A stretch of DNA of 64,000 nt from Salpingoeca rosetta. Lineage: Eukaryota > Protista > Choanoflagellata. Location of the stretch: contig JAWQFM010000021.1 of the NCBI GenBank assembly GCA_033442325.1, positions 344,040 through 408,039 of the forward strand, read 5' to 3'. This document shows, piece by piece, positions 38,744 to 43,705 of the stretch. The first letter of the stretch is position 1; each line of letters opens with the position of its first letter. Made by a program: the position numbers and the translations under genes. The notes beneath the pieces were generated by a model. It worked only from the letters and a program-made list of their open reading frames with translations, did no database searches and was not told where the DNA came from.

Positions 38744-41700
38744 ATGGCTTCTCGACGCATCCGGCGTCGGTCCAGCTTCTGGGGCGGACAGCCAGAGCAG
38801 GTGGAGCCAGGAACGCGCCTGGAGTCTTCTCAACAAGGCCGCGTCGCTGCTCAGATTGGCGCAACAATGAAACGCGGAGGTGTGTGTCTGTGTATGTGTG
38901 CATGAGATTGTGTGTATGTGTGTGTAAATGTGCGTACACTTGTGTAAGGCTTGAAATATGTGCGCAGGAACGTGCACGATCCTTCCATTGAGGTGCACGC
39001 GCGTTCTTGCCGTCACACACACACACACACACACACAACACACACACACACACACACACACACACACACACACACACACACCACACGCATGCACAGGTGC
39101 GCGTGTGGCGAATGGCATGGCACGTTGGTTTGGCGTGGCTGGCGACAACGAGGATGCGCGGTACCGACACTACCAATACCAGCAGCACAAGATCCAGCAG
39201 CAACAGGCCCGCCGAAATGAAGGCCAGGGCCGCCTTCGTGGAGAACAAGGACAAGGCAACCTGGAGGTGAGCGTGTGTGTGTGTGAATGCGAGTGTGAGT
39301 GTGTGTATTTGTATGCGAGTGTGTATTTGTATGCGTGTGTGTGAATGTGTATGAATGTGTATGAATGTGTGTGAGTGTGTATGTGTGTGCATGAGTGAAT
39401 GTACATCCGTGAGGGTGAGTGAGTGTGCATGAGCGTTAAGTGGCCTGGCCTCATGATTTCGGACGATCATCTCGCTGGATTCCAGCAACTGAACGACATC
39501 TTGGAGTCCTCTGACGAAGACTCGGACTACGACGCAGACAAACACGGTGAGCGCATGCGCCTCTCTCTCTCTCTGTCTCTCTCTCTCTCTCTCTCTCTCT
39601 CTCTCTCTCTCTCTCTCTCTCTCTGTGTGTGTGTGTGTGTGTGTGCCAGCGTTGCAGGCAATGTGTATCCACGACCACCCAGTTTTCGTTGTCTTCGCAG
39701 TAGCCCTCCTCATCTCGCAGCTCACAACTGAACCTCTCCTCTCCCCCAACACACACACACACACACACACACACAGAGCACGACATGATCTACAATGTGG
39801 ACGAAGGCCTGCTGCACTACCGCCAGCTGCGCGATGAAGAGAACCGCAAGATTGTCAAGCCCGGGTGGTTTGGCGGGCAGGTCAACCGTAACCGCCAGTC
39901 CGTACATGCAGCCGGTCTTGCTGATCTGCGACGAAAGACAAAGCACCGCCGCGTCTCGCGCGTGCGCAGGGACACGCTCGTGCAGGCGCAACTTGAGGCC
40001 ATGCCCACATACTCGCCCATCTTCATCGAAATCATCACCTTTGTGCAGGTGTGTGTGTATGTGTGCGTGTCAGAAATGTGTTGCGTGTGCTTGTGTGCTT
40101 GTTTGTGTGTGGTGGAGGATTTACTTTCTTGTTTAGTTTTCGTGCGTGAGCACATCTGCTCAGCTTTGCTCAGCATCCTGTGACATCTCCCTTCAACTAC
40201 ACACGCCCACGATCTCTCCATTCTCCTCACGTGCACTGCGTGTGTGTGTGTGTGTGTGTGTGTGTGTGTGTGTGTGTGTGTGTGTGCTGTCTCGTCAACT
40301 CCAGGTGCTGGTATTTGTGTTTCTGTTTGCATACGCATACACGCAGAACGAAATTGCAGAATTCGGGTTCACCGACAACTCGGTCACGTGTGCAGCGGAC
40401 ACCACGCCCCAGTGCGAGCTCTTCAACGGGTGCGTGCCGTCGTGGTTGAAGTGTCCTCGCCGGAGAGCCGAAGGGGCGGGGGGATGTAGTTATGGCTAGC
40501 ATGTTCCACACGACTCAGCGCTGCTGTTTGGTTTTGGTGAAAGGATGTCTTCACCACATGGTCGTCCACCTCACACTATTTGCCGCTCACTGCCGCCACC
40601 ACTACCGCCATCTTTGCTGCAGCACCCTGAATATTGGCTCTGTCGCCACCAAGAAGCGAAACTTCCTCTACGGACCAACGGACGATTTGTTGCTGGGAGT
40701 AAGACGCAATTGAGGTGGAGGATGTGGTGTGCACATGCGTGCGCTTGTGTGCACGAGCGTGTACGAGTATGTGTGTGCGCGCGTGAGCATGTGTATGGGT
40801 GTATGGGTGTATGTGTTTTTGTGTGTATTTGTGTGTATTTGTGTGTATTTGTGTGTGTGTGTGTGTATGTGTGTGTGTGTGTGTCGCGAAAAGACAACTT
40901 GGAAGGATGACACCCGATGCTCACATGTACACATGTTCCCCTTGTCCCCCCTTTCCCCTCTTTGTTCAGGTTGGAGCAAAGTTCTCTGCGTGCATGCGTG
41001 ACGATTCCGAGTTGCGTAAGGACGCGTTGGCCACGCGGGCCAAGGAGTGCGGACCGGGGCGTGATCCGCCAAACACGTGCGAGGGCGGAACAGAGGGATA
41101 CGGTGAGTGCGCTGATGTGGTGGTATGTGGGGCGGTGGCTGCGTCATCGTGGCAAGGCAAAAGCGTGTGCGTGCGTGTGTGTGTGTGTTTGGGTACATGC
41201 ATCTGTGTTGCATGTAAAACTACACTCGTCGACTGTCTCTGTTGTGCCGTCAAAACGTCTCATCTACCCACTCACTAACGTCACATCTACACCACTTCAC
41301 CCCATCATCCCGCCCCCTCTTGTCCTTCCCTTTCCCTGACAAAAGGGTGCTGCACGCTTGACTCTGGTCGTGCTGGTATGACGTCACGCGATGCCTGCAT
41401 GCAATCTGGGGGCACGTGGGAGGACCGGCTGTGCACCAGCGCCGACTTTGTCTACATCCGGTGTGTGTGTATGTGTGTATGTGTATGTGTGTATGCGTTT
41501 GTGTGCATGTGTTTGTGTGTTTGTGAATGTGTGTGTATGTGTGTGTGGACGTGGATGTGGACGTGTATATGTGTGCGTATGTGTGTGTGTGCGTGTACGT
41601 GTGGACGTGTATATGCATGCGTGCGTGTGTGTGCGCGTGTCTGTGTCTCCCGTAAGTCGTTTTGACAACCTACTGCTTCTATCGCCACCACCACCACCAC

Positions 41701-43705
41701 CACCACCACCACCACCACCACCAACACCACCACCATTTCAAGGCCGTGTTGCGGGGTTGGTGGGTACGCCAAATGCGCCATCATGACGGAGAACGAGTGC
41801 GACTTCCAGGGCGGGACGTGGCAGATTGACCAGGTGCTCTGCTCGGAGACGCTCTGCCTCGCCGACACGTGCCAGATTGATAAGGTGCGGTGGACTGGTT
41901 GCTGCGTTGGTTGATGCGTTGGTTGCGCATGTGATGGGGCAGTGACTGGCAAGCCCGCATCTGAATATTGCCTCTCTTGCGGCATAGATACCAACTCTCT
42001 CTCACTCTCTAACGCACACACACACACACACACACACACACACACACACACACACACACACACACACACACACACACACACACACACACACACACACACA
42101 CACACACACACACACGCACACACACACACACACACACACACACACACGCACACACACACACACACACGAATGCATACACCATCTCGCAGGTCGGGCTTGG
42201 CGTGACGGCTGACCCCGAGGTGCCCAATCTGCCAAAGAATCCCAATCAGTGGTTCCGGCTGTTCACATCTCTTTTCATCCACGCGGGCGCCATCCAACTC
42301 GTCATCATCATGAGCATCCAGTGGTATGCTGGGCGCCAGATTGAAACACAGGTGCGCCGTGGTGGTGGTGGTGGCTGTTGTTGTAGTCGTGCCAGTTTCA
42401 ACCACATGCACGCATCCATACGGCTGCAACAGGACACAAACACACGGCCACAGCTGCTGCATGCCATGAGCTCATCCATTACATGTGACATGGTGCCATG
42501 GTGGTTGACAATAGGCCGGGTTTCTTCGCACGTTTCTCGTGTATTTCATCAGCGGCGTCGGCGGCACCACCATTGCAGCCATCTTCTCTCCAAACCTCGT
42601 CAGTACCTTTGTGCATGCATGCATGCGTGTGTGTGTGTGTGTGTGTGTGTGTGTGTGTGTGTGTGTGTGTGTGTGTGTGTGTGTGTGTGTGTGTGTGTGT
42701 GTGTGTGTGTGTGTTGTGTGTGTGTGTTGTGTGTGTGTGTGTGTGTGTGTGTGTGTGTGTGCGTGCGTGTGTCAGACCTTGGCAGTGGATTGTGCTGGTG
42801 TGCAATCGGTTGTTGATGACAGAAGTTGACAACCCTGCTTGTCCCGTCGTCTTCCCATCGCCCTCCCCCCTTGCAGGTCACCACGGGCGCCAACCCGGCC
42901 GTGTATGGGCTGCTCGGCTGCGTTCTTGTTGAGCTGCTGCAAACGTGGCAGGTGCGACGGCTGTGATTGCTTGCCCCTCTGCTTTGACATTGACTGTCCC
43001 CGCCTGCTTGCCCGCTGTGAAGCAACGCGCTCACAAGTTCACACACACACAGCTGTTGGAGAAGCCATGGCTGCAGTTGTTGAAGCTTGTTGCGATCATT
43101 GCGTTTCTGCTGCTCGTCGGGACACTGCCCTTCCTCGACAACTGGTCGCACGTCGGCGGTTTTGCGTTTGGTGCGTTTGTCCCTGAACCCCTCTCCGTGC
43201 TCACTGAAGCTCTCGGGTCTTGCGCGTATGCGTGCATGTGTGTATTCGTGCATGTGTGTATGCATGTTTGTGTGTTTGTATGCTTGTACACGTATGCGCG
43301 CGTGTGTATGCGCGCGTGTGTGTGTGTGCACGTATGCGCGTGTTTTTGCATGAACGTGTCGTCAGTGTGTGAGTGTGCGCTGGCATCTGGAATGTGGCGA
43401 CGGTGACTTCAAGTCACCACACCTCTTGATGCGCTCACCTCACGCATCAACCATTTCATCCGTTTTGGCTTGTTGTGCCAACTGCAGGTGTTGTGGCAGG
43501 GATTGTGTTCCTGCCCTACATCACCTTTGGCGAGTGGGATGTTGCTCGCAAGCGGCTGCTCTTCTTTGTCTGCTTTCCTCTCTTGATTGGCATGTTCATT
43601 GCCGCGTTTGTCACCTTTTACCAGATCCAGAACACCAACTTCTGCTCATGGTGTGACTACGTCAATTGCATCCCGTACTCCCCCGATCTCTCCTGCAACA
43701 CATGA
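38744..43705 (+). CDS. Inactive rhomboid (iRhom/RHBDF-like) pseudoprotease
   Basis: Long cytosolic N-terminus with ARWFGV, then VQAQLE...PIFIEIITFV (TM1). Cys-rich luminal region NFLYGP..GAKFSACMR..GCC..RPCC. Core PNQWFRLFTSLFIHAG, TM4 TTGANPAVYGLL, VELLQTWQLLEKPW, LPFLDNWSHVGG and LPYITFG. These are colinear with animal iRhom motifs as I recall them. Confidence 0.9.

Follow-up and report, generated by a model that had tools for sequence, protein, structure and literature searches.

The stretch of DNA analysed here (the window: 64,000 nucleotides, positions 344,040 to 408,039 of contig JAWQFM010000021.1 in assembly GCA_033442325.1) comes from the choanoflagellate Salpingoeca rosetta and carries, at 38744-43705 on the forward strand, the gene PTSG_07830. 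A first-pass annotation of the sequence had described its product as an iRhom orthologue outside animals. From the analyses described below, the protein is probably a seven-helix, iRhom-type rhomboid pseudoprotease, belonging to a choanoflagellate subfamily with the motif Gx[N/D]P in place of the catalytic GxSG, to which the canonical animal iRhoms are likely paralogues, and acting without proteolysis.

The PTSG_07830 locus and its transcript

The coding region comprises 14 exons with 1887 coding bases for 628 amino acids (aa), and all introns have GT..AG borders. The spliced translation is identical, residue for residue, to the entry P0001 of our sequence set, the NCBI record "hypothetical protein PTSG_07830 [Salpingoeca rosetta]", for which UniRef has the name "Peptidase S54 rhomboid domain-containing protein". 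The protein is thus already public, as a hypothetical protein, and its identity to the S. rosetta record shows that the contig is not of metazoan origin. The five motifs from which the first-pass annotation argued (WFGV, GAKFSAC, GANP, WSHVGG and LPYITFG) are all present, at the positions included in the following list, where TM denotes a transmembrane segment and the basis of each entry is given in brackets.

38744-43705, + strand: whole coding region of PTSG_07830 (GT-AG gene model, identity to P0001)
38744-38879, + strand: exon 1, start codon and beginning of the cytoplasmic N-terminus (gene model)
39097-39266, + strand: exon 2, cytoplasmic, with the WFGV-acidic motif at 39126-39137 (motif common to animal iRhoms and holozoan relatives)
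39486-39546, + strand: exon 3, cytoplasmic acidic stretch (gene model)
39777-40048, + strand: exon 4, end of the cytoplasmic domain of about 200 aa and TM1, residues ~204-226 (hydropathy; helix 204-226 in the AlphaFold2 model)
40305-40429, + strand: exon 5, beginning of the luminal Cys-rich domain, with the clade-specific Cys241 and Cys250 (table of Cys columns)
40623-40698, + strand: exon 6, luminal domain (gene model)
40970-41102, + strand: exon 7, luminal domain with GAKFSAC at 40973-40993 and the clade-specific Cys307 and Cys317 (alignment, Cys table)
41346-41460, + strand: exon 8, luminal domain with a CC pair; family core Cys 4 and 7 absent (alignment, Cys table)
41743-41884, + strand: exon 9, luminal domain with RPCC and the final six conserved Cys (alignment, Cys table)
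42190-42351, + strand: exon 10, QWFRL loop motif and TM2, with His441 (42280-42282) and Ile450 (42307-42309) at the position of the oxyanion Asn (Pfam Rhomboid, table of catalytic residues)
42515-42598, + strand: exon 11, TM3; donor after 42598 borne out (loose ends of RNA reads at 42877)
42877-42951, + strand: exon 12, TM4 with GANP for GxSG, codons GGC GCC AAC CCG at 42886-42897, the Asn codon AAC at 42892-42894 (alignment to GPAG of human iRhom1, RNA depth)
43053-43170, + strand: exon 13, TM5 and beginning of TM6, with His550 (43149-43151) in WSHVGG at 43143-43160 (residue table; read joint 42951>43053)
43488-43705, + strand: exon 14, LPYITFG at 43511-43531, TM7, luminal CxWC..C.P tail and stop codon (PDB matches; read joint 43170>43488)

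Transcription was followed in two stranded RNA-seq runs from 2026 (X21 and X22), the raw reads of which were placed on 42765-43712, i.e. exons 12-14. Read depth is about 40-57 in exon 12, 44-72 in exon 13 and 61-118 in exon 14, all from a single strand, and joints are seen at 42951>43053 and 43170>43488, both with GT..AG borders. The GANP codons are free of listed variants, which confirms the AAC codon and speaks against a serine codon in its place; the sole listed difference is a C>T at 42944 from one run (8 of 66 reads, two start sites). Upstream of 42877, 26 and 28 reads together with two contigs continue into ACCATTGCAGCCATCTTCTCTCCAAACCTC. As these are the last 30 bases of exon 11, ending at 42598, the splice 42598>42877 that the first-pass annotation wanted confirmed is real, its support coming from the loose-end sequence of those 54 reads and two contigs and not from a listed joint. 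PTSG_07830 is therefore an intact, spliced and expressed gene.

Intron 12 (42952-43052; 101 nucleotides, not a multiple of three) is covered at about 15-20% of the exon depth in both runs, which suggests that it is partly retained. At 43672, four reads from X21 are preceded by about 36 letters, TCCTGCTGCACTGTGACGACTTGTGATACG, that are found nowhere in 42765-43712. Nearly every intron between 38880 and 43487 has a GT-rich microsatellite at its start and a CA-rich one at its end, up to about 150 nucleotides long, as exemplified by the (CA)n and (GT)n repeats at 42015-42170 and 42620-42760.

Architecture, fold and active site

According to the literature, iRhoms "are only found in metazoans" and have three hallmarks, namely a long N-terminus, the IRHD and an invariant proline in the motif GPx (Zettl et al. 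2011, PMC3149277). The IRHD is located between TM1 and TM2, is about 230 aa long (PMC3149277, PMC6451368) and has 16 conserved cysteines (Dulloo et al. 2019, PMC6451368).

Hydropathy analysis of PTSG_07830 reveals seven membrane segments, one before and six after a loop of 206 aa with 16 cysteines. About 200 aa of cytoplasmic sequence precede TM1 and include a [WF]FG[VIL]-acidic motif that is also found in iRhoms of fish, ant, amphioxus, coral and the sponge Oscarella, as well as in both choanoflagellate groups, Capsaspora, Corallochytrium and Creolimax. A Pfam search with the full protein returned the Rhomboid family only (residues 429-565, E 3.9e-31), which was also the one family found with single exons. 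When all PDB sequences were searched with phmmer, only human iRhom1 and iRhom2 matched (E 1e-57 to 1e-53), with alignments spanning TM1, the start and the last third of the luminal domain and the entire rhomboid core; exon 14 by itself likewise has iRhom2 and iRhom1 as its sole matches there.

A 55-sequence alignment served to build the AlphaFold2 model, whose pLDDT averages 84 and is mostly above 90 from residue 200 on. In a Foldseek comparison of this model with the PDB, human iRhom2 ranks first (8snl_B, E 2e-26, 504 columns, TM-score 0.75 by target), human iRhom1 reaches a TM-score of 0.80 by target (9xy4_A), and the matches to the two proteins overall extend over 464-505 columns with TM-scores by target of 0.73-0.80. 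GlpG ranks after the iRhoms, with about 138 columns only and an E-value of about 4e-4. Since the iRhom match extends over about 500 residues and the GlpG match over about 138 columns, the luminal domain of PTSG_07830 takes, in the predicted structure, the IRHD fold.

The features that characterize a wider holozoan family of IRHD-bearing rhomboids are all found, i.e. the core Cys columns in the first loop (L1), LPY[IV]TFG after TM6, TM7 and a Cys-bearing tail. The "full iRhom architecture" attributed to the protein in the first-pass annotation is, however, overstated: the N-terminal motif, IRHD fold, seven TM segments and C-terminal tail are there, but the cysteine set agrees at 12 of 16 positions and the Pfam family iRhom1-2_N (PF12595) is unmatched.

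In TM4, G496-A-N-P499 aligns without a gap on G-P-A-G of human iRhom1 in the phmmer comparison with the PDB, and G496 is invariant in the 55-sequence alignment. The catalytic serine is thus replaced by Asn498, the next glycine by Pro499 and the TM2 asparagine by Ile450, with both TM6 His550 and TM2 His441 being kept. Codons, alignment and residue table agree with the earlier description of GANP at the GxSG position next to a retained TM6 histidine. The TM2 asparagine (N154 in GlpG) forms the oxyanion hole in active rhomboids. Among 67 relatives compared, all rows with GxS[GS] and both histidines keep this asparagine, and the rows without an intact motif all lack it, except Corallochytrium (GASA). 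Since the serine, the following glycine and the TM2 asparagine are all replaced, PTSG_07830 is predicted to be a pseudoprotease on three counts.

With regard to the definition of iRhoms, the protein has a rhomboid-like fold without the essential catalytic residues. It does not have a proline at the GPx position, and neither does any other member of its clade, described below. Of the active site of secretase-type rhomboids only the two histidines remain, the serine, the fourth-position glycine and the asparagine having been replaced.

Relatives, phylogeny and loss of catalysis

Relatives were collected by a HMMER scan of 1.8 billion representative sequences with exon 14, supplemented by word searches. 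Full-length orthologues (group A) were found in Microstomoeca, two Hartaetosiga, S. infusionum, two Choanoeca, S. kvevrii, Monosiga brevicollis, Didymoeca, Stephanoeca and S. helianthica, so that group A spans both choanoflagellate orders. Its TM4 motif is G-x-[N/D]-P, with N and D in 12 of the 24 rows each and Pro in 23; the TM6 histidine is kept in 21 rows and the TM2 asparagine is absent from all 24. A second choanoflagellate group, B (S. infusionum P0025 and S. helianthica P0062), reads GAGG or GATG and has a Pfam SH2 domain in its cytoplasmic tail.

Outside the choanoflagellates, the TM4 motif is GGTG in Capsaspora, GASA in Corallochytrium and GSSG in Creolimax, where all catalytic residues are intact. 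Animal sequences, including those of the sponge Oscarella and corals, have GP[SA]G. Two sponge proteins are non-canonical, namely P0206 of Dysidea avara (GPCG, both histidines lost) and P0107 (GASG, TM2 asparagine lost), the latter from assembly GCA_964019385, which is that of Sycon ciliatum (PMC12419799). Sponges carry non-canonical IRHD rhomboids besides a canonical iRhom, and a GPx-like motif may have arisen twice, given that the Dysidea protein groups with the SH2-bearing clade. The motif table that the first-pass annotation had called for is herewith compiled for choanoflagellates, Capsaspora and sponges, and Gx[N/D]P marks group A as one choanoflagellate-wide clade. The occurrence of relatives in more than 12 choanoflagellates and in Capsaspora, Corallochytrium and Creolimax also upholds the proposal that the scaffold of iRhoms, with its N-terminal motif, IRHD fold, TM7 and tail, is older than animals.

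A maximum likelihood (ML) tree was computed with IQ-TREE from 67 rows and 528 columns under LG+C20+F+G4 by PMSF; supports are given as ultrafast bootstrap/SH-aLRT. The IRHD-bearing proteins form a single clade of 53 rows (100/99), in which those of Creolimax, Capsaspora, Corallochytrium, choanoflagellates and animals are all included, with plant RBL2 and the short-loop rhomboids outside it. PTSG_07830 hence does not group with active secretase rhomboids, a placement among which would have spoken against the iRhom assignment. The canonical animal iRhoms form one clade with P0036 and P0187 (100/99), these two being sister to the canonical sequences. Group A is a clade of its own (100/99); it is sister to a six-row group that includes Sycon P0107 (99/94), and this pair joins a clade of Dysidea, P0052 and group B (95/85). 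The order in which Capsaspora, Corallochytrium, the Creolimax group and the canonical clade branch around this assemblage is not fixed by the tree.

The luminal cysteines are nearly independent evidence and agree with the ML tree. The core of the family comprises 14 cysteines, and the canonical clade, P0036 and P0187 included, has a further two within a single insert. Core Cys 4 and 7 are missing from group A as well as from the Sycon group, and four extra cysteines (241, 250, 307 and 317) are found in group A only. The 16 cysteines of S. rosetta and the 16 of animals consequently have 12 positions in common; we considered the equal count as a synapomorphy with animal iRhoms and rejected it as a coincidence of number.

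The alternative that PTSG_07830 is a strict (one-to-one or co-) orthologue of iRhom1/2, descended from one choanozoan gene that was already dead and whose TM4 motifs have since drifted, appears unlikely. It would account for the common architecture, fold and N-terminal motif and for the loss of the TM2 asparagine in both groups, and forcing group A to join the canonical clade costs 16.9 log-likelihood units with p 0.072 in the approximately unbiased (AU) test, so that this placement is disfavoured but not rejected at 0.05. Yet the ML tree sets group A with Sycon (99/94) and with Dysidea and the SH2-bearing proteins (95/85), apart from the canonical iRhoms, and the cysteines tell the same story, core Cys 4 and 7 being lost in group A and the Sycon group alike and the two-Cys insert common to canonical iRhoms, P0036 and P0187 being absent from group A. 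Moreover, Ser or Thr is still found in early canonical iRhoms (GPSG) and in the group sister to them (GASP, GATP), and the change from Ser to Asn was therefore not inherited from a common dead ancestor. Of the first-pass claim of an iRhom orthologue outside animals, the iRhom-type build outside animals stands; as regards orthology, the grouping with sponge paralogues in the ML tree and the cysteine pattern make it most likely that canonical animal iRhoms are paralogues of group A rather than strict orthologues.

Provided that no lost site is ever regained, the ML tree with its root on the plant group calls for four separate all-dead clades; unordered parsimony requires three changes. One dead clade consists of group A and the Sycon group and is separate from the clade that holds the canonical iRhoms; the SH2-bearing P0052, predicted to be active, is placed between the two. 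Early animal iRhoms (Oscarella and Oculina) read GPSG and the sister sequences GASP or GATP, which implies that the nucleophile in the canonical ancestor had not yet been replaced by anything but Ser or Thr. Independence of the TM4 lesions is thus supported by the motif states even under the rival topology, in line with the first-pass proposal that catalysis was lost here separately and in a manner different from GPx. The earlier loss of the TM2 asparagine may be shared more widely.

It could also be asked whether PTSG_07830 is still an enzyme, with the Asn or Asp and the retained histidine forming a new intramembrane catalytic or ligand-sensing dyad. The conservation of N/D (24 of 24), Pro (23 of 24) and His (21 of 24) among the rows of the clade, in both choanoflagellate orders, is tighter than a merely decayed site would show. 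Nevertheless, asparagine is no nucleophile, the oxyanion Asn of TM2 is gone in all rows, a proline in place of glycine should distort the top of TM4, and in a subclade of Stephanoeca A2, P0089 and P0093 the histidine is changed to Gln while the N is kept; we regard this alternative as very improbable. The idea of a decaying pseudogene or annotation artefact, in favour of which nothing but the missing catalytic serine speaks, can be dismissed in view of its open frame over 14 exons, the spliced and strand-specific RNA at a depth of about 40-118, the full-length identity of 73% to the mRNA-assembled orthologue of Microstomoeca and 47% to that of Monosiga, and the high-confidence AlphaFold2 model.

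A broader scenario may be put forward tentatively, its chances being clearly below even. The IRHD rhomboids of the holozoan ancestor would have been working proteases, and by the time of the choanoflagellate-animal ancestor they would have split into about three paralogues, a canonical, an A-type and an SH2-bearing B-type lineage, each of which would have been inactivated separately and by a lesion of its own. The N/D-Pro next to the retained His, fixed in the A-type throughout the choanoflagellates, would then reflect a new non-proteolytic use of the former active site, such as sensing of a client helix or of lipid, and not decay.

Some further observations concern the relatives. The MMETSP transcript P0052 combines SH2 with seemingly intact GASG, Asn and His, and would thus be a phosphotyrosine-reading rhomboid, predicted to be active. 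The environmental sequences P0036, P0187, P0147, P0037, P0209, P0211 and P0212 read GA[ST]P in TM4, and their TM6 histidine is gone; this is a third kind of lesion, in which Ser/Thr is kept and Gly is changed to Pro. The genes neighbouring P0187 gave no Pfam match. A basal clade with 14 cysteines (P0034, P0049, P0058, P0076 and P0095) is predicted to be active. The Sycon P0107 gene spans 38 kb. The N-termini of Capsaspora P0011, Corallochytrium P0017 and S. helianthica P0013 look EF-hand-like, P0013 by Pfam matches below threshold and P0011 and P0017 by eye in the alignment.

Proposed function and comparison with known systems

Within a holozoan family of IRHD rhomboids that also contains the canonical iRhoms, the Gx[N/D]P subfamily is one lineage among several. 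Because PTSG_07830 fails the proline test, shares the cysteine set in part and falls outside the canonical clade, it is classed here not as a canonical iRhom but as a rhomboid pseudoprotease that is iRhom-like, bears an IRHD and belongs to a distinct subfamily of choanoflagellates.

How such a protein might act can be considered in the light of the animal iRhoms, which have no proteolytic activity and which bind and regulate transmembrane clients such as ADAM17 and EGF-family ligands (PMC3149277, PMC6451368). With serine changed to Asn, glycine to Pro, the oxyanion Asn gone and the TM6 histidine kept, the old active site would be unable to cleave. By analogy, the rhomboid core together with TM1 probably holds a membrane helix of a client and the luminal domain its ectodomain, by which trafficking or activity of the client would be controlled without cleavage. 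The analogy draws on two reviews (PMC6451368, PMC12615303) and on the structures 8snl, 9o58, 9q7y and 9xy4. That N/D-Pro and His are so tightly conserved suggests some continuing use of the old site.

Several points weigh against this interpretation. The full-length protein has no match to Pfam iRhom1-2_N (PF12595), a family that is likewise without a match in the Oscarella iRhom. Several rows of the tree are from metagenomic or transcriptome sources, and the paralogue call depends on the 95/85 and 99/94 branches, with the alternative at an AU p-value of 0.072. A strictly polar N/D beside a kept histidine could mean that the old site may still do something. Finally, the non-proteolytic mechanism is inferred by analogy with animal iRhoms.

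About 30 kb upstream, at 6505-9406 on the forward strand, lies a gene for an ADAM-type metalloprotease, with Pfam matches to reprolysin_5/2/3 and disintegrin. Among PDB sequences it matches ADAM10 best (E 6e-21), the match to ADAM17 being weaker (E 5e-9). A functional link between PTSG_07830 and this ADAM10-like gene was considered and rejected, there being nothing beyond their location in the same window.

A full-text search of the available literature library yielded no paper treating iRhoms in choanoflagellates or Capsaspora in substance. Contrary to the reviews (PMC3149277, PMC6451368), the supposedly metazoan-only iRhom scaffold predates animals; versions predicted to be active survive, e.g. 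in Creolimax, and the switch from enzyme to pseudoenzyme has occurred several times, by way of different lesions. Since S. rosetta is amenable to culture and genetic modification, the ancestral role of the IRHD and that of a dead rhomboid site are testable there, in a simple cell without TNF or EGFR signalling.

The closest known systems are the animal iRhoms, i.e. RHBDF1 (iRhom1), RHBDF2 (iRhom2) and rhomboid-5 of Drosophila. Like these, PTSG_07830 has seven TM segments, a cytoplasmic N-terminus (here about 200 aa) with the [WF]FG[VIL]-acidic motif, the IRHD fold (in the model), LPYITFG after TM6, TM7 and a Cys-bearing tail, and it has lost the TM2 asparagine and has no working serine nucleophile. 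Unlike them, it has G-x-[N/D]-P in TM4 instead of G-P-x-G, so that the invariant proline of PMC3149277 is missing. Of its luminal cysteines 12 are common to both, two of the core are lost, four are private and the two-Cys insert of animals is absent. In addition, iRhom1-2_N is unmatched, the protein falls outside the canonical clade and its host is a unicellular choanoflagellate.

The predicted-active IRHD rhomboids of unicellular holozoans (CFRG2740T1 of Creolimax fragrantissima, P0204, P0019 and P0052) belong to the same 100/99 family and share with PTSG_07830 the luminal domain, LPYITFG and the tail, and in the case of Creolimax also WFGV; their Cys core is 14, and unlike PTSG_07830 they keep GxSG, both His and Asn of TM2 and the TM6 His. 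The Sycon ciliatum P0107 group, the sister at 99/94, has, like PTSG_07830, lost core Cys 4 and 7 as well as the TM2 asparagine, but the Sycon protein (GASG), like P0206 of Dysidea avara (GPCG), has neither Gx[N/D]P nor the four clade-specific cysteines. With secretase-type rhomboids such as E. coli GlpG and plant RBL2 the protein shares the six-helix core, and a CxWCxY..C.P tail is also found in Lactuca RBL2; in these enzymes the IRHD is absent, the L1 loop is short and contains 0-4 cysteines, and the set of GxSG, Asn and His is intact.

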